Shown here: piece by piece, positions 38,213 through 47,389 of the stretch
Layout of the letters: each line of letters starts with the position of its first letter
Numbering within the stretch: the first letter of the stretch is position 1
From: Chlorokybus atmophyticus
Taxonomy: Eukaryota > Plantae > Mesostigma and Chlorokybus algae
NCBI GenBank assembly: GCA_009103225.1
Contig: RHPI01003642.1
Location: 735,099-799,098, forward strand
Length of the DNA stretch: 64,000 nucleotides
Direction of reading: 5' to 3'
Notes under the pieces: model-generated
Told to the model about the DNA's origin: nothing
The model's database searches: none
What the model saw: only the letters and a program-made list of their open reading frames with translations
Translations under genes and position numbers: made by a program

Positions 38213-41200
38213 ATGGCGGTGGTGGCGAGGACGGCGTTGTCGACGCAGCTTGCCCAGCTCGCGCTCGCGGCGGGAGATGTGGCACACAGGCTGCCGAAGG
38301 GCAAGCCTTCGCTGCTGTACGACCCCAAGGAGGCGGCGGACATAGACATCACAACCATCTATCACATTGGTTGCAGTGGTAATTACTTAATCTTCACACT
38401 GACATCAATAGCCCGTCGGGAGTATACCTATATTATATCATTACACATGATCAGGATGGTTTTGCCTTGCATGCATCTGCTATCATCTTGTACGTACTTA
38501 CAGCTGTTGTTGTCAGCGTATAGAGCTTCATGCATGTTGCACGTTTCGGAAATCCAGTGTTGGAGAAGAGTACAGCCTGGTGCCGGGCATGTACACAGCA
38601 TGCATGTAAAACAGACATAGCGTGGCATGACCGAGCTCTGCTTGTGATGAGCTACCTTTCTTCCAGGCCTTGATGAATTGTGCGAAATGGACCCGCGTTT
38701 TGAAGTCTTCCGCAGCACGCTGTTTAGTGCGGCCGGCAAAGAGGTGATCATGGATTGTGTTTGGTTGCTTTATGCAATGCGGTACGCTGCGTGTGTTGAA
38801 AGCCAGTCAGCTTTTAGATGACGAGGTGTAGTTTTTCATCCGTTACACACCGTTACACACCTGACAGCTGGATCGCCAAATGGAAGTGAAAGAAGTGAAC
38901 GAGCAGCTTGACAAGTCGCTGCACGCATTTCTTCGCCTGCTCTCTAACTACTTCTTGCTGTCACCTGCGCACAAGACGTTAGAGTTTCTGATTCGGCGCT
39001 ACAGGTTGGTGCAAGCGTATTACTTTCAAGCTGCTTATGACAAATCATGATGAATCATCATCCTTAGCTTGCATTTAGTGCATGAGAATGGGGTGGAGCA
39101 CATGTGCATGACACTGTGGTGCTGTAACACAGTGGTGACAGCTTTGCTAGTTAGTTACGGTCGGGACCACGTTGCCTGTGATGATGTTTACTCTATGGAT
39201 CAACCACCTGAAATAGTTATGTGGATGACTTGAGGTCTGAGGCAAAGCAGCCCTGGTTGCGTGTTTGGGTGGGGGGGTGGGGGGGGAGCTACTGGACACA
39301 GCCCCGTGTAGTGTGTGCTGCCCGTGATGATGTGTACTCTTTGGATCAACCACCTGAAACTCCATGTGGATAGCATGAGACCTGAGGCAAGCATTAGAGA
39401 GGTGTTTTTCACTTGCGAAAAGTCAAAGAGAGGGGGACTAGTTTGCCTTTGATGAGGTTTACTCATTGGATCAACCACCTGAAACTCCATGTGGTCAACT
39501 TGAGGACTGAGGCAAACCGCTGTGTGCTAGTTGTGCAGGGTACTCGGCTCTCCTGTGACTTGCATACAGCTGATGCGTGTTGTGTGTCTCTTGCAGCATC
39601 TACCAGTACAACGTAGATTCAATTGTCTCCAGCTTTCTACCCTACCACCAGACTGCCATTTTTGTGCGGCTAATGCAGCTGATGCGGTTGGAGTAAGTGC
39701 ACTGCAGAGTGTTCACTGTCACCGCGTTTTGCCCAACGTATCAATTGGTTTTGCCCTGCTTCACCAACATTTGCAACTGGCGCGCAGGGGATCAATCTGG
39801 AGCTTTCTAGCTGGTATTCGAGAAGCGGGAGCTGCAATGCCGAGAACCCAACTGGTGCAGCAATGTGCAAAAGACACTGCTCTTTTGTTAGCAATCTGCG
39901 ATGCGGTATGCTTTAACAATCTGTCGCTGATGACTTCTTTCAAGCAGCTCAGCCGCAACCGCCAGCTTGTGCCTTTGCACATTAATAATGCTGACTGTCT
40001 TGTAGGCAGTTGAGGTGTCCAGTGCCGAGTATGCTTCCAGCCGCATGCTGTGCTTCTATGCTGTGGTTGTCATGGAGACGCTGGCAGTTATGCCGGCTGT
40101 CACAAACGAGTTCCTCCCCCGCATCATTCCCTATATAAGCAAGGGGCTGCAGAAAGGAGTGGCCCCCGATTTCGTGGTACGTCTGGGCTGAGGGTTGACA
40201 GTGTGATTCTTAACTAAGAACATGTCACCGTTGTTGTGCACTCCAGCCATTCTGTCAGGTTCTACACCATACCGTACCCTTGTTTGTTCCTACTCATAAG
40301 GCGTTGTGCAGGCAGGCACGTACATGGTGCTTATGCAGCTGGCCCATAGAGTCGTGCTCGCTCCCGAACTGGCGCAGGCGTTGGTGGAGGCTGTTGCTCG
40401 CGCTCCGGCCAATACCGGAGGCTCTGAATCCGACGCCTTGCTGGCGCTGTTGATGCTAGCTCAGGTTTGTTGTTGTTTGCACAGTTGCATTGCTGCAAGC
40501 AGCAGCAGGACCTGTACTGTTGTGCTCATAATTGCTTCCTCGCGTCATTTGTAGACCCAAGGTTTGCAGCAGCTTCCAGACAGGGCTTTCACAGCCCTCT
40601 TGAAGTTCAGGTGAGTGGAGCGCTGTTAAAGGTGATGGTTGAATGGTATATGCACGGTTGGCTTTATCACTGTTGTTTGTTGGCAGAGATCTGCCTGCGG
40701 AGCTCAACCACGTGAGTTTGAAGTATGATGTGGCACCGCTTCTCAGATTGATTATCAGCAGCCATATTCAGCATTGGTGAGCACAACTATCGCATGCTAT
40801 TGCCCTTCAGATTCGACGCTACCATGCGTTTGTTGCTAACGACTTTTGTTGGTCTCCTGCAGTGTGGGGAGTGAAGACTGTGAGCAAGGAATGCAGGCTT
40901 TGATCACCAAGGTTCCCCTCGGAAGCCTTGCAAATGACACAGCAGCAGCGTTGCTTCGATTATTGTCTACAGAGTCAAAGAGTGAAATATTCACAGCTGC
41001 TGTGCCCACCATGCAGCGCTTGCTGCGCGCGTTGGACCTGCGGTACCCACAGCAAGTTGATAAGCAGATCAATGCCGTCTTGAAGGTATGACAACACCAT
41101 TTGCTCAACTTGCAAGGCATGACTTACCAACCCATGGTTGCATACCGCAGCAAAGGAGAAAATCTTCAGGAGGTCTCAATGGGGAGCAGCAGGGTGCTGA

Positions 41201-44200
41201 TGCTTTGTCGGCGTTCTTGAATGAGACTTTCAGCTTTAGCTACCACAAGCCGCTAGAGGAATCGCAATCCAGTCTGCTCCTTTCGTTGAGTCATGCGAAG
41301 GTATGCACCTATTATGAGTACTGGTTTGTCATCTAGATACTGACATGGCTTTCAGGCGCATATTCGAGCCTTGGCCATCAATGGTCTGGCAGACATGGTG
41401 GAGCCAGACACTGATCAGCAAGAAGAGCTGCGGCGGTTCGTGCAGGATGCCATGCTGCGCATCATGCGGGAGGACGAGTCTGAGGTCGTGTTGTCCGTCT
41501 TGAACCACTCCAGACTCGTTGACATCGTCCCAGCAGAGCCTCTTTTCGAGGCGCTGTCTGCCACTCTGCAATCTGCACACGACACTGTTGTCGGGGGCAG
41601 TGCTGACAAAGCAGCCAAGCAAGCGGCGCAGAGCGTTATGAAGCAGGCTCTGCAGCTGGTTGGCACAGAGTTGGCCGCGCGCGATGACGCACCTACTGAG
41701 CGCATCGTCCTGCTTCTGCTGCAGTACTCGCTGGTGATGCCCAAGGTATACATGATGCAGAAAGGTTTTCCTGAGTGTTTCGTTTTGAGCTTGCATGCTT
41801 ACATACCTCTGGTCGGCTATCTCACCCTCTTTACGTGTCCATCCAGACAAGAAAGCGCAATTTGCAAGCGCGGAGTCTTGCCAGCTCTCTTGATCATCCA
41901 TTGATGCAAGGCGTCTCAGTTCAAGAGCAAGACAACAGTGGCAAGGTATCCTCCAAACTTTGCGCCACAAACACATCATAGCGACAAGTGCAGAGGTTGT
42001 AGTGACACAAACCGACGTTGTTCTTTTACAGGATGCTGACAAACAACTCAACGCCTCTGCTGTGGAAGCTATGGCTGGCAACATGCTTGGGGATGTCATG
42101 AACCTGCTGCCTCTCGTTGCGCAAGTTGTTTCTACAGCGCCAGAGCGCAACGCTATGTTGTTGTTGGCTCTCCAACAGTTCTTGACGCTCGTAGATCTTC
42201 AAAAGACTAAAAAGCGATCAGCAGTGCTATCATTGCTACCAACTGTGTTGGCAGCATACATGCAAGGATGGCGGTTGTTGGAAGACAAGCCGGATGCCCA
42301 ACAGCACATCCAGCCGCTGGAAGCCTTAAACCTCACAACATCAGCTAGCGACGCTGCACAGCACATTAACATAATTGATACCAAAACAGTTGCTGCGATG
42401 GTTGTGCGTGGACTGTATGGTTACATCCAGTGCATCTCATCAGGAACGACAACGGTGCGTGAAACACAAACCTGTTTTATTATATGCAGCTGGCATGTGC
42501 GTTGTTATGCTCAGATTGCTTTTTCGTCGTTGGTATGCATCCACAGGATGTCCATGTGGATGCCTTCAAGGCGCTCTCCACACCGAGGTCTGCATCGGTT
42601 TTCAAGCGTCATCTGCATTTGCTCGTCTCTGCCACAGAGTCGCCAGTGCAGTATTTGATCGACATGGTTACCTCAGAAGCGGAGAAGCGCGTCCATGTAA
42701 GACAAACAGCACAATCTGGCGTGCTCTTGATTGTTAGCAATTTTGGCTTGTCTCATTTGCATTGGCATGCGCAGGTCATGGCACTGGAGTTGTTGTCCAG
42801 TGTGTGGGACACGGCAGCTCTTGAAAACAAAGGCAGCAATGCCACATCCCCTGATGCCCTGCAGCTCGGCCTGCCAGCCTTGTTGGTGGCTTTGCGCAGC
42901 GCGGGCAGTGCTGTGCGAGAAAGTGCCGTTGTTGCATTACAAGCTCTGTCTCGCCTGGTGTCCACTGATCTAATGGTACGTTACGCTGACAACAATCACT
43001 ACGAAGCTCTCTTGTCTAATGCGCTGACTATGTTGGCGTGCAGCTGTTTGACAACCGAGAAAGCACGGATGTCTTGCTGGCAGCAGATTATCTCGTGCTG
43101 GTTGAAAGCCTTGTAGACGCGCGTGAGGGCCTGAAGAGCGATGCAGGGCATCTACCAGCTGTTCTGTCGCAGCTGCTGTTGCCCATCGATGATGATGCCA
43201 TGGATACAACGATATTTACTGGGGATGCGCAAGAACGAATTGTGGCTTGGTTAGCCACGCGCGCTGTGCAGCTACCGACAGAGTATGCACAGGTAGGCAG
43301 TTGATGCCTCTCATGTTGCACACAATATGGCGGGATTGCCGAGCCTTTCACCTCACAACTTGTCCACAGCATGCACTGTTGGCATCATTGGTGGACGCTG
43401 GCCACGACCTGCAGCAGGCCAAGGCCACGCAGTCGTTGCTGCAATCGCTTCTAGCTAAACCGGCCAGCCTCACACCAGCGCAAGCGCAGATTGTCACTGT
43501 CGTCCTACCTCACTACGCGGCTGCTGTGTCTTCAGATGCGGCCAATGTTGACTTGGCCACATTGTTCATGCGTGCGTGTGCTGCTGGAGCGCAGCAGGAT
43601 GATGGCACTTTGAGACCTGTACTCGCACAGATACAGGAGGTAGCTGTGTGCCATGTTGGTGCCTCCTTGTTTGAAGCCTTGTCTGACGACCGCAAGGTGA
43701 TGATAAAGTCCTTCACTGGCTGATGCTTGCATGTCTGACAGCAATTTCATGTTTGCACAGCAATAATACAAGTGTGTGTGGACAGGTGGAGTTGTTGTCG
43801 CATCTGCTACGTGCAGTTAACCGAGGCACAGATGTCAAGTTAAGGGCGTCCGCACGTGTTGCGCTGGAAAAGCTGCCGTTACCTGCTGATGTATATGTGC
43901 AATTCATTGTTGCGGCCAGCGGAAGTGGTGGCGATGATGCAAGCAAAACGGCTTCCAAGCGGCGCAAAACACCCGCCAAGACCACTGCGCGCAGTAACCA
44001 GCTTCCAGAGGCCTTGTCTATCTTGGCTGAACCTGATCGATTGGCACTTGCTGTTTTCGCTTTAGAAACTTTGCAGTGGAAAGGAGTATCCGGTGATCAG
44101 GTAAAGAAGTTGTGTCTGCGTCTGTCTGTCAGTCTTTGCTGCTCGCAACAGGTGTGCGGTTGTGTCTTACTGTTTTACCTTTGCCTGGCGTAGTTGGTGT

Positions 44201-47200
44201 TGGCGGCTCCGCTCTACACGCTGCTCACCCGCTTGCTGGAGGGCAACCTCGCGGTGCAGCCTGCTCCTGTTGATGGCGAGGATGCCGATGCCGGGCAAGC
44301 TGGCTCAGTCGACTTCAACTTGGAGTACATCATTCAGCTTGTGCTGCAAAATATTGAACAGATTGTGCGCGCAGCAGACGCACCCTCTACCACTACACCT
44401 GCTGGCAAGAGAGGTGCTGCTTGCCATAAGTTTTTATTGAAAGCAACCACGTCCTTAATCTGCATTCTGAGCTGTCAGTCTCACTTTTAAACTTGCTCAT
44501 GACAGGCTCGCGAGCTCAGGGAAGAAATAGCCTGGTGGATCTGTTCCAAGTAGTGCCGATAGTTCAATGCATCGAGCGGCAAAACCCTACCACGCGCAAT
44601 CACGCTGTTGCTGTGCTGGCTGCGCTGGCGAGACTCTTGCCTGATCAGGTAAACGCTTGTTGTTGACAAGTCAGTTTGAGGGCATTATTTTGCTTCTGTC
44701 TCGGCTGTTGTCAGTAACTCATGACTCCTGCCCTCCTCAGGTGCTGGAGCGCGTGCTTGATGTCTTCACTGTCATGAGCACTACCACCCTCACTCAGGGA
44801 GACGCGACATCCTTCCGCGTCACCCTTCAGATGCTGGAAGCCGTGGTTCCATCCTGGTTGGCAACCTCCCGCAACGTCACGCAGCTTCTGCAGGTCTTCG
44901 TCAACGCGCTCCCCCACATGTCACTCGATCGACGAGTACCATTGTTTGATGCACTCCTCAGGTCAGTGTCAATGTGTCGTTCTTACTGGTATGCCTGAAC
45001 GTGTATGCCTTCACGCGTGTTGACAATGCAAGCACTGCAGGGCACTGTCGGCGGATTATCTGCACACGGTGTTGTTATTACTACTGCGCGTGGTCGTACG
45101 GAGACGGGCTGAAGGAGAGGAAGGGTCTGTTGCTTGGGCGCTGGACTTTGCAGAGCAAGTGTCGCAGCTGTTTGCAGGCAGCACGCGCGTCACTGCTTAT
45201 GTTCAGCTGCTCGCAGCTGCTGAGGGAGACGACATTTCTGTGCGTGTGCTTGCGTGCACAACGATTGCATCGCACATTGCCACGAGCCAGTTCCTGCCTG
45301 CGCGCGCAGCAGTAAGTGCTGCAAACGATCAAGAGGCCCTTCATCAAGGGTATGCCAAGCTGATGGAGCGTGCACTGTTGATGGTGAGTGCGCAAAGCGA
45401 CGAGTCTTCGGAGGTGAACACTGCCGCATACAACCTCCTGGAGGGTCTTGCCACCAGGCTGGAGGATGAGACCTACATCACTGGCGTGACCTCGCTGATT
45501 GGGCACGCCAACAAGCATGTCCGTCGCAAAGCGCTGCGCTTGCTTTCTAACAAGCTGTCGCAGCTGGAGGGCGGCCGGGCGGCTGCTCCCGCTGAAGCCG
45601 CGACGTACCTGAGCAAGCTCCAGCCCGTTGCAGACCGGTTGCAAGCCCCGAAAGAGAGCAGCAAAGCAAAGCAGGCTGCGCTGTTCGCCCTACACACAGC
45701 AGCACGCGCACTCGGTAGGCAAGCCCCCGAGGCGCTGGCCTCCCTTCTGCCGCCTGTGCTGGCAAGTGTGTCTAGCGCCAACAGCAGCGTGGCCACAAGT
45801 GCCGTGACCGCTTCTGCAGGCGTGGTGGCTGCTCTGGGCACGCAGGCCCTTCCGCACCTGCCAGCCATGGTGGACAAGGTCCTGTCTATTGGCAATGCTG
45901 CTGCTGAGCAGTCTGCTGCTACGGACGATACCAATCTGCAAGAGGAACAATCGCTGCTTCTGGCAGCCTGTCTCACCGCTCTGCAGCTTCTTCTGACTGA
46001 CTTAGGACCTTTCCTTAGCCCTTATGTGCAGCGGATTGTGACATTCCTGTTACAGGTAATGCATGAGGGAGGCTTTGGTCACTTGTTGTGTGTCTGCTGC
46101 CAGAGTCCTGTTATGCTTACACTGATTTGTTGGTAACCGTGCAGCCGCATGTTATCACGTGTGAAGCCGCTGGCGTCTCTGCCACTTCCGCTGCAGTCCG
46201 CGTGCTCATCCCGGAGAAAGTGCCCACGCGCTTACTCGTGGACCCTCTCCTCGCTACCTACTCTGCAGCCGTCTCTGGCGGCGATGCTTCGCTGGTTTGC
46301 CTCTTCCAGCTGGTGGGCTCTTTAGCCTCCAGCTTAAACAGGGCTGCAGCCACCACGCATCACAAGGCGATGTTCAACTTCTTTGTGAAGGCGTTCAACT
46401 TACGTCAGCAGCAGCCTGATAGTGTCCGAGACATTGAGGAGGTTGAGACAGCCATGGTTGCGTCTTTTATGTCGCTGGTCATGAAGCTAAGCGAGAGTAC
46501 CTTCAAGCCGCTGTTCCTGACGATCCTGTCGTGGGCAACAGCCAGTGATGAAGCTCAGCCGGCCTTGACCAACAAACGTGGCCTAGTTCTGTTTCGAGTT
46601 ACCAACGCACTGGCTCACCGGCTGCGGTCGGTTTTCGTCCCTTACTTTAAGTACTTGCTGGACCTCGCAGTGAGGTTGCTCACTGCGCAACAGGTTGTGG
46701 TACCTGAAAGGAAGGCACGCTCCTCCAAGAAAGCGAAACTCGCCGCCGACGCGGTCAAAGCCATCCCTGTGGATGTGTGGCGGCTTAGAACGCTGGTCGT
46801 CCTCGCCCTGCACAAGTGCTTCTTATATGACAATGTGGGCTTCTTGGATGCGCTCAAGTACGAGCGCCTGCAGCCCTCTGTGGTTGGCCTTCTGGATGCG
46901 TATCCATCGCCCGAGGCACTCGCTCTGAGGGTCAGAGATGCGGATGGCCAAGAAGTGGGCTTCTGTGAGGCCGTCGTGCAGTGCATAGCGCAGATGGCTG
47001 TTGCCACAGGCACGGATGCGCTGTGGCAACCATTGAACCGAAGCGTCTTGATGAAGCTTCGCACTCGGAATGTCAGCACAATTGAGTGGGTGTTGAGAGT
47101 TGTATCAGAAACGGTATGTTTATCTGCATGTGCTCATTGCAGGTTCAGCTTAGCCCATCACCTATATCGCTTGTGCATCTCTATCTGGATGGTCATGATG

Positions 47201-47389
47201 ACAATTGCACCTCTCTTGCAGGTCGAGAGGCTGCAGAACAACTTCACGCCTCTCATACCAGAGACGTTGACATTCCTTGCGGAGGCCATGGAACTTGGGG
47301 GTGATCCCATTGTCAACATCGTGCGAGGGATGATCTTGCGCATGCAGGAGGTGTCCGGCGAGGACTTGCAGGAATACATGAAGTTTTAG
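38213..47389 (+). CDS. UTP10: U3 snoRNA-associated protein 10 / HEATR1 (BAP28), multi-exon
   Basis: N-terminal TALSTQLAQL...KGKPSLLYDPKEAADIDITTIYHIG, FLRLLSNYFLLSPAHKTLEFLIRRY, HEAT repeats, and a C-terminal BP28CT region (MKLSESTFKPLFLTILSWA...IPETLTFLAEAME...DLQEYMKF*). Confidence 0.97.
39172..39245 (+). ncRNA. Box C/D snoRNA, copy 1 (intronic in UTP10)
   Basis: Terminal stem TTGCC/GGCAA; box C GTGATGA 39178; guide GGATCAACCAC then D' CTGA 39208; box D CTGA 39237. Confidence 0.85.
39319..39390 (+). ncRNA. Box C/D snoRNA, copy 2 (intronic in UTP10)
   Basis: Stem TGCC/GGCA; box C GTGATGA 39324; GGATCAACCAC then D' CTGA 39354; box D CTGA 39382. Confidence 0.85.
39441..39517 (+). ncRNA. Box C/D snoRNA, copy 3 (intronic in UTP10)
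   Basis: Stem GTTTGCC/GGCAAAC; box C TGATGA 39450; GGATCAACCAC then D' CTGA 39479; box D CTGA 39507. Confidence 0.85.

Follow-up and report, generated by a model that had tools for sequence, protein, structure and literature searches.

A triplicated box C/D snoRNA in a UTP10 intron of Chlorokybus atmophyticus, with a guide complementary to the 5′ end of 18S rRNA

Three box C/D units within UTP10

A 64,000-nt stretch of the Chlorokybus atmophyticus genome (contig RHPI01003642.1; the whole of it is called the window below) carries the gene for UTP10/HEATR1, and the third intron of this gene holds three direct repeats of 73–76 nt each that are box C/D small nucleolar RNA (snoRNA) units (window 39172–39516, plus strand). 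A first-pass annotation of the same DNA had described three such units, each with a terminal stem and boxes C, D′ and D, and had placed them in a UTP10 intron at 39005–39596. Both parts of this description hold, the location being supported by spliced contigs and by protein matches in the flanking exons.

Spliced contigs from two sequencing runs, X1 (the same species, with 100% identical sequence) and X3 (a sister taxon, 90–95% identical), lack a 592-nt segment whose GT..AG ends can be placed at 39005–39596, and a contig from run X4 also skips 592 nt, with ambiguous ends. Exon matches of a database protein (P0001; 2108 aa, Chlorokybus atmophyticus, EukProt/JGI), which was used for the full-length host-protein searches, flank intron 3 and join the residues LIRRY and SIYQYN across the junction. 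This protein reaches up to 100% identity in the exons by tblastn, was retrieved at 99% identity when the C-terminal exon region was used in an exhaustive HMMER search, and contains the domains PF12397, PF23243 and PF08146. The exon at 40306–40470 matches the Pfam U3snoRNP10 domain with 36 bits (cut-off 34.4), and the next relatives of the host protein are land-plant orthologues of At3g06530, at approximately 40% identity.

All three units are closed by a terminal stem of 4–6 bp, (T)TGCC...GGCA(A), and all have perfect CTGA motifs as D′ and D boxes. The C box reads GTGATGA in copies 1 and 2 and TTGATGA in copy 3, and the C′ box is degenerate, reading ATGTGGA in copies 1 and 2 and ATGTGGT in copy 3. 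One base 5′ of the perfect D′ box, every unit keeps the same guide, GGAUCAACCA, whereas the guide adjacent to box D, which spans about 8–11 nt, is different in each copy; this division into an invariant and a variable guide had been recognized from the outset. Each unit combines terminal C and D boxes and a stem with internal D′ and C′ boxes and with a 10-nt antisense element to ribosomal RNA (rRNA), whose predicted target nucleotide lies at the fifth position. In the predicted single-strand fold the stem closes the ends of the molecule and no other significant structure appears, as expected for C/D RNAs.

Within the units the copies are 78–86% identical to one another, and their flanks and spacers are unalignable. 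The only columns that are invariant among the copies are those of the stem, the boxes and the block GT.TACTC..TGGATCAACCACCTGAAA. The 10-mer GGATCAACCA occurs in the 64 kb only at the three unit sites (0.15 occurrences expected), and the composite pattern TGATGA..GGATCAACCAMCYGA..CTGA has three matches in the window, compared with none in 100 shuffles. A family sequence model built from 32 members (R1) matches the three copies with 43–46 bits and nothing else in the window, and at Rfam gathering thresholds no family matches anywhere in the window.

The sister taxon carries a similar arrangement. Low-depth X3 contigs cover copy 1 (39100–39261) and copy 3 (39411–39534), and a loose contig end, CTGAGGCAAGC..., corresponds to the 3′ end of copy 2. 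Because copies 1 and 3 and the 3′ end of copy 2 are all represented in X3, the triplication is older than the split between X3 and Chlorokybus. Around copy 1, six changes fall within the 24 nt upstream and three in the D′–C′ loop, with no listed change in 39178–39213, which comprises the C box, guide and D′ box. Copy 3 has three changes, none of which falls in a box or in the guide core. The X3 comparison excludes the D-guide region, since differences close to contig ends are unlisted.

Features of the UTP10 locus and its snoRNA units (window coordinates; R1 scores are from the family sequence model)
Feature	Position	Strand	Details
UTP10/HEATR1 host gene	38213..47386	+	~20 exons; tblastn of P0001; orthologue of At3g06530
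UTP10 intron 3	39005..39596	+	hosts snoRNA cluster; 592 nt, GT..AG, phase 2, after about residue 126
snoRNA copy 1	39172–39247	+	stem TTGCC/GGCAA; R1 45.7 bits, E 5e-13
Copy 1, C box	39178–39184	+	
Copy 1, D′ guide	39197–39206	+	
Copy 1, D′ box	39208–39211	+	
Copy 1, C′ box	39219–39225	+	
Copy 1, D box	39237–39240	+	
snoRNA copy 2	39319–39391	+	R1 44.6 bits
Copy 2, C box	39324–39330	+	
Copy 2, D′ guide	39343–39352	+	
Copy 2, D′ box	39354–39357	+	
Copy 2, C′ box	39364–39370	+	
Copy 2, D box	39382–39385	+	
snoRNA copy 3	39444–39516	+	R1 43.4 bits; 3′ end 80 nt from 3′ splice site
Copy 3, C box	39449–39455	+	TTGATGA
Copy 3, D′ guide	39468–39477	+	
Copy 3, D′ box	39479–39482	+	
Copy 3, C′ box	39489–39495	+	ATGTGGT
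Copy 3, D box	39507–39510	+	

Other features of the host gene were observed in passing. The spacer between copies 1 and 2 contains a G-rich run, GTGTTTGGGTGGGGGGGTGGGGGGGGAG (39261–39290), that might form an intronic G-quadruplex. The 5′ part of the snoRNA intron (39040–39135) has a C-box-like motif, CATGATGA, and an inverted repeat, CACTGTGGTG...CACAGTGGTG, with no D box and no Rfam match, and the X3 contig over copy 1 starts at 39100, inside this stretch. Elsewhere in UTP10, a weak Rfam match to mir-194 (43721–43814; 25 bits versus a gathering threshold of 52, E 0.03) is most likely due to chance.

Complementarity to the 5′ end of 18S rRNA

Candidate targets were ranked by a pairing search anchored on the fifth nucleotide, using 22 ribosomal DNA (rDNA) loci that span 18S through 25S and derive from eukaryotic contigs that contaminate prokaryote assemblies. 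The top site of each of the three D′ guides is 18S nt 5–14 (UGGUUGAUCC), which forms 10 Watson–Crick base pairs in 22 of 22 loci. This is the complementarity that the first-pass annotation had pointed out, and no better target appears elsewhere in these loci. The runners-up reach 9 bp at most, the closest being 9 Watson–Crick pairs at about position 2387, outside 18S, in two of the 22 loci, and the others either include wobbles or have 7–8 pairs. The chance of finding a given 10-mer in approximately 5.5 kb of rRNA is about 0.005. The fifth-nucleotide rule puts U8 of 18S at the methylation position (D′+5), in agreement with the earlier prediction. Nucleotides 5–14 of 18S correspond to the 5′ strands of helix 1 and of the central pseudoknot.

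The source of the rDNA sample is itself worth recording: more than 100 bacterial and archaeal genome and metagenome-assembled genome assemblies (GTDB-based; L001–L103) contain eukaryotic 18S rDNA contamination contigs.

The D-box guide probably has no target of its own. Each rDNA offers 3–10 sites at which all three D guides can form 6 bp or more, and the individual candidates for additional pairing were rejected. Among them, 18S C38 (the site of snoR66 in Arabidopsis) pairs over 6–7 bp, ties with a site at 18S ~1022 and is not significant, while a 9-bp match of the copy 1 D guide at 18S ~1597 uses bases of the C′ box and is absent from the other copies. An extra UACU/AGUA pairing 5′ of the D′ guide (18S nt 19–22) has 4 bp only, and its UAC is unconserved across the family.

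The site predicted for the D′ guide is shared with U3 snoRNA. In the yeast small-subunit (SSU) processome, the U3 Box A duplex comprises 18S nt 9–15 (Barandun et al. 2017, bioRxiv 10.1101/175547). The overlap with the snoRNA duplex, which had been anticipated, amounts to 6 nt, and because the two duplexes overlap they are mutually exclusive on 18S. As predicted for the D′ guide, U3 Box A pairs with this end of 18S through a GGAUCA core, and it blocks early formation of the central pseudoknot. U3 is otherwise a very different RNA: it is long, essential and non-methylating, and it has boxes A′, A, B, C and D together with hinges that pair with the 5′ external transcribed spacer. The Chlorokybus units (73–76 nt versus more than 200 nt) have no box A or A′, no box B and no hinges, and Rfam scans returned no match to U3.

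Relatives in other eukaryotes

When copy 2 was scanned by itself against Rfam at permissive settings, TtnuCD24 of Tetrahymena thermophila (RF02300) emerged. With scores of 13.5 bits for copy 2 and 18.9 bits for copy 3, far below the gathering threshold of 75 bits, the Chlorokybus copies are not members of RF02300 by the Rfam criterion. TtnuCD24 nonetheless shares 18 consecutive identical positions with them, UUUGGAUCAACCACCUGA, which cover the guide, the single spacer base and the D′ box. It also has a UAC soon after the C box and, in our pairing scan, the same predicted target at 18S nt 5–14 and U8. It is unlike the Chlorokybus copies in its length of 58 nt and in its canonical C′ box (UGAUGU), and Tetrahymena snoRNAs are not intronic in UTP10. 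Its D guide (UUCUACUGGCGA) forms 9 bp with 18S nt 15–23, with C18 at position 5, whereas the D guides of Chlorokybus have no such pairing. Together, the D′ and D guides of TtnuCD24 cover 18S nt 5–23 without a gap. The second guide thus gives independent support for the 18S 5′ end as the target of the family. TtnuCD24 is an expressed RNA, experimentally detected in Tetrahymena (Andersen & Nielsen 2012, PMC3273799).

A second known relative is Ot-CDsno34 of Ostreococcus tauri, a 76-nt intronic RNA that is expressed at 120–415 transcripts per million (Bouchouche et al. 2020, PMC7671301). It carries GGAUCAACCA one base 5′ of D′, within ...AAGGATCAACCAACCGA..., and shares with the Chlorokybus units an odd C′ box (TGTGGAT) and the style of the terminal stem (...CUGAGGCG). 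Its differences are a C box that reads GUGACGA, a D′ box that reads CCGA, the single copy and the host gene ostta04g00910, which is annotated as ‘unknown’.

Two plant families resemble the units less closely. SnoR66 (RF00202), which guides Cm38 of Arabidopsis 18S (PMC8053127), scores 17.7 bits against a gathering threshold of 43 and has a different D′ guide, UCUUUGAGAC; snoR77Y (RF01178) scores 27.3 bits against 52 and likewise has a different guide, UGGAAUUACCG. The sub-threshold matches to snoR77Y and to SNORD78/79 reflect the generic C/D layout only. A full-text literature search for the guide sequence, 18S Um8 (2′-O-methylated U8) or TtnuCD24 gave no relevant match.

Many more relatives were found by scanning metagenomic contigs from JGI with the pattern TGATGA-N(6-16)-GGATCAACCA-M-CYGA-N(15-45)-CTGA. 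The scan yielded 56 loci representing 37 distinct sequences, on contigs of 15–58% GC, with two GC-rich matches (L144 and L159) set aside as probably due to chance. The one-base spacer and the D′ box of these relatives are preset by the search pattern. The features left unconstrained are typical of C/D snoRNAs: mostly a purine 5′ of the C box, a C′ box of the form UGAUGA or AUGUNGA, and complementary flanks. The AUGUNGA variant of C′ recurs in the family alignment, often among the metagenomic relatives, and the guide is the only invariant block of this alignment besides the boxes. The D guides of the metagenomic sequences differ by group and mostly lack a clear target.

The association with UTP10 recurs outside Chlorokybus. 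On one set of contigs of approximately 52% GC (JAABU*; L107, L109, L111, L113, L114 and L131), a single snoRNA copy lies between UTP10 exons on the sense strand. A tblastn comparison of Chlorokybus exons with the metagenomic loci places this intron more 3′ than the one in Chlorokybus UTP10. The UTP10 sequence of these contigs is nearest to chlorophyte sequences, and by this measure their source is probably an uncultured chlorophyte. Neither the pattern nor R1 finds a homologue in the UTP10 genes of Selaginella, Riccia, Pedinophyceae sp., Gonium and Closterium, or in a UTP10 Logan contig of an unidentified organism. The first-pass annotation had suggested looking into the UTP10 introns of other algae, and the outcome is mixed: the association of snoRNA and UTP10 is real in two lineages and, because the five identified genes and the Logan contig lack the snoRNA, it is not general. 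In Gonium pectorale, an 11-mer, GGATCAACCAC, is present on the sense strand (L163:105–150), with the start codon of UTP10 lying about 390 nt downstream. It has no recognizable C or D′ boxes, and could be either a chance match (~2% for 12 kb) or the relic of a decayed snoRNA.

The possibility that this RNA was new, which the first-pass annotation had left to be checked, was thus only partly realized. Its Rfam scores are below gathering, but the same guide and D′ box are present in RF02300, in Ot-CDsno34 and in the 37 metagenomic relatives. The Chlorokybus copies are new, triplicated members of an existing, old and poorly characterized snoRNA family, two of whose members are detected RNAs.

Methylation guide, chaperone or relic

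We favor, with a probability of roughly 0.6, fibrillarin-dependent 2′-O-methylation of 18S U8 as the function of this RNA, either ahead of U3 Box A docking or following U3 release. In its layout the RNA resembles any ordinary methylation guide, with a perfect D′ box, a C′-like box, one spacer base and a duplex of 10–11 bp. We infer that the three units would be paralogous, functional intronic box C/D snoRNA genes that are transcribed within the UTP10 pre-mRNA and released from intron 3 as mature RNAs by the cutting and trimming usual for plant and algal snoRNA clusters. Each RNA would then assemble with Snu13, Nop56, Nop58 and fibrillarin into a small nucleolar ribonucleoprotein (snoRNP), and its 10-nt GGAUCAACCA would pair with 18S nt 5–14. 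This pairing would put U8 opposite the fifth guide nucleotide, and fibrillarin would therefore 2′-O-methylate U8. Since U3 Box A holds 18S nt 9–15, the snoRNA would have to act before U3 docks or after it leaves.

Several observations weigh against this proposal. The 5′ end of Chlorokybus 18S (UACCUGGUUGAUCC) is assumed on the strength of its near-universal conservation. All three C′ boxes are degenerate, that of copy 3 most severely, and a processome site that is held by U3 Box A is an awkward substrate for methylation. The X1 RNA contigs represent spliced mRNA only, and the intronic X3 contigs are shallow and reach past the unit ends, which is no proof of a mature snoRNA. We know of no ribose methylation (Nm) at 18S U8 in the yeast and human maps; RiboMeth-seq has poor coverage of the first ~10–15 nt of an RNA. 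Ot-CDsno34 is described as specific to Mamiellophyceae and is assigned the target 25S.U2561 (Table S4, PMC7671301). Finally, the 18S sites of the Arabidopsis RiboMeth-seq map begin at A28, which is followed by C38, and include no Nm at U8 (PMC8053127). Arabidopsis, yeast and human may simply lack this snoRNA.

The most serious competing explanation is that a C/D snoRNP binds 18S nt 5–14 without methylating it and serves as a chaperone of folding or processing, in the manner of U3, U14 domain A or snR30. It could keep the strand of helix 1 and the central pseudoknot single until U3 Box A takes over, or it could compete with U3. The 6-nt overlap with the Box A site would suit such a role, as would the missing Um8 in the Arabidopsis map, the clamp-like coverage of 19 contiguous nucleotides (18S nt 5–23) by the guides of TtnuCD24, and a host gene that encodes a processome subunit in two lineages. 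However, in its geometry the RNA exactly matches a methylation guide, and in the 37 metagenomic relatives, whose spacer and D′ box are preset by the pattern, the duplex is 10–11 bp and never longer. Moreover, the chaperone snoRNAs known so far are essential RNAs that are abundant and serve a single purpose, whereas the abundance of Ot-CDsno34 is middling, and the RNA is missing from the land-plant UTP10 genes checked, which implies that it is dispensable in some lineages. On balance, we consider a pure chaperone unlikely. There is less reason still to view some or all of the copies as decaying duplicates, that is, snoRNA pseudogenes that yield no stable RNA. The weakened C (UUGAUGA) and C′ (AUGUGGU) boxes of copy 3 are what decay might produce, and the restriction of the Chlorokybus RNA contigs of X1 to spliced mRNA is consistent with it. 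Nevertheless, stem, boxes and guide have been kept in all copies while the spacers diverged past alignment, and the sister taxon retains the cluster, its changes falling only on non-essential positions; decay of this kind seems improbable.

The published target of Ot-CDsno34 raises another alternative, in which the D′ element guides methylation of 25S rRNA (U2561) at the conserved sequence UUUUUGAUCCUUCGAUG and the match to 18S is incidental. In addition to the Table S4 entry, this is favored by a 9-bp match to 25S, TTGATCCTT, that the Ostreococcus guide makes in 20 of the 22 rDNA loci. The same guide, however, forms 11 contiguous Watson–Crick base pairs with 18S nt 5–15, and the guides of Chlorokybus and Tetrahymena form only 7 bp at the 25S site versus 10 bp in 18S. 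The 25S pairing also places the fifth guide position at the end of the helix and leaves positions 3 and 4 from D′ mismatched, and the family-invariant GGAUCAACCA fits 18S and not 25S. A 25S target for the family therefore appears very improbable, and judging from these pairings the published U2561 assignment of Ot-CDsno34 may be wrong. Methylation of 18S U8 remains the reading that we prefer over these three alternatives.

U3 Box A docks at the extreme 5′ end of 18S, and the central pseudoknot forms there as well. To our knowledge, neither a guide RNA nor a ribose methylation has been assigned to this end in yeast or human, and the snoRNA described here is missing from the snoRNA sets of both. 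The Arabidopsis map likewise assigns neither to this end (PMC8053127). The same 10-nt guide recurs in Chlorokybus, an early-branching streptophyte alga, as well as in a prasinophyte, in a ciliate and in dozens of eukaryotes that are uncultured, which points to an old family that acts on this site and is dispensable in some lineages. Its breadth, its unusual target and the probable mis-assignment of the Ostreococcus target add to its interest, and the 25S U2561 target merits re-examination. We offer only tentatively, as a possibility that may well prove wrong, the broader view that this is an ancient and widespread snoRNA overlooked in model organisms, whose sole conserved task would be binding to 18S nt 5–14, either installing an unmapped Um8 next to the central pseudoknot or handing the 18S end to U3. 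Its residence in UTP10, seen in at least two green lineages, would couple its supply to processome production. Hosting by UTP10 in two lineages, in different introns, provides a case of a guide RNA whose host gene belongs to the pathway that the guide would serve.

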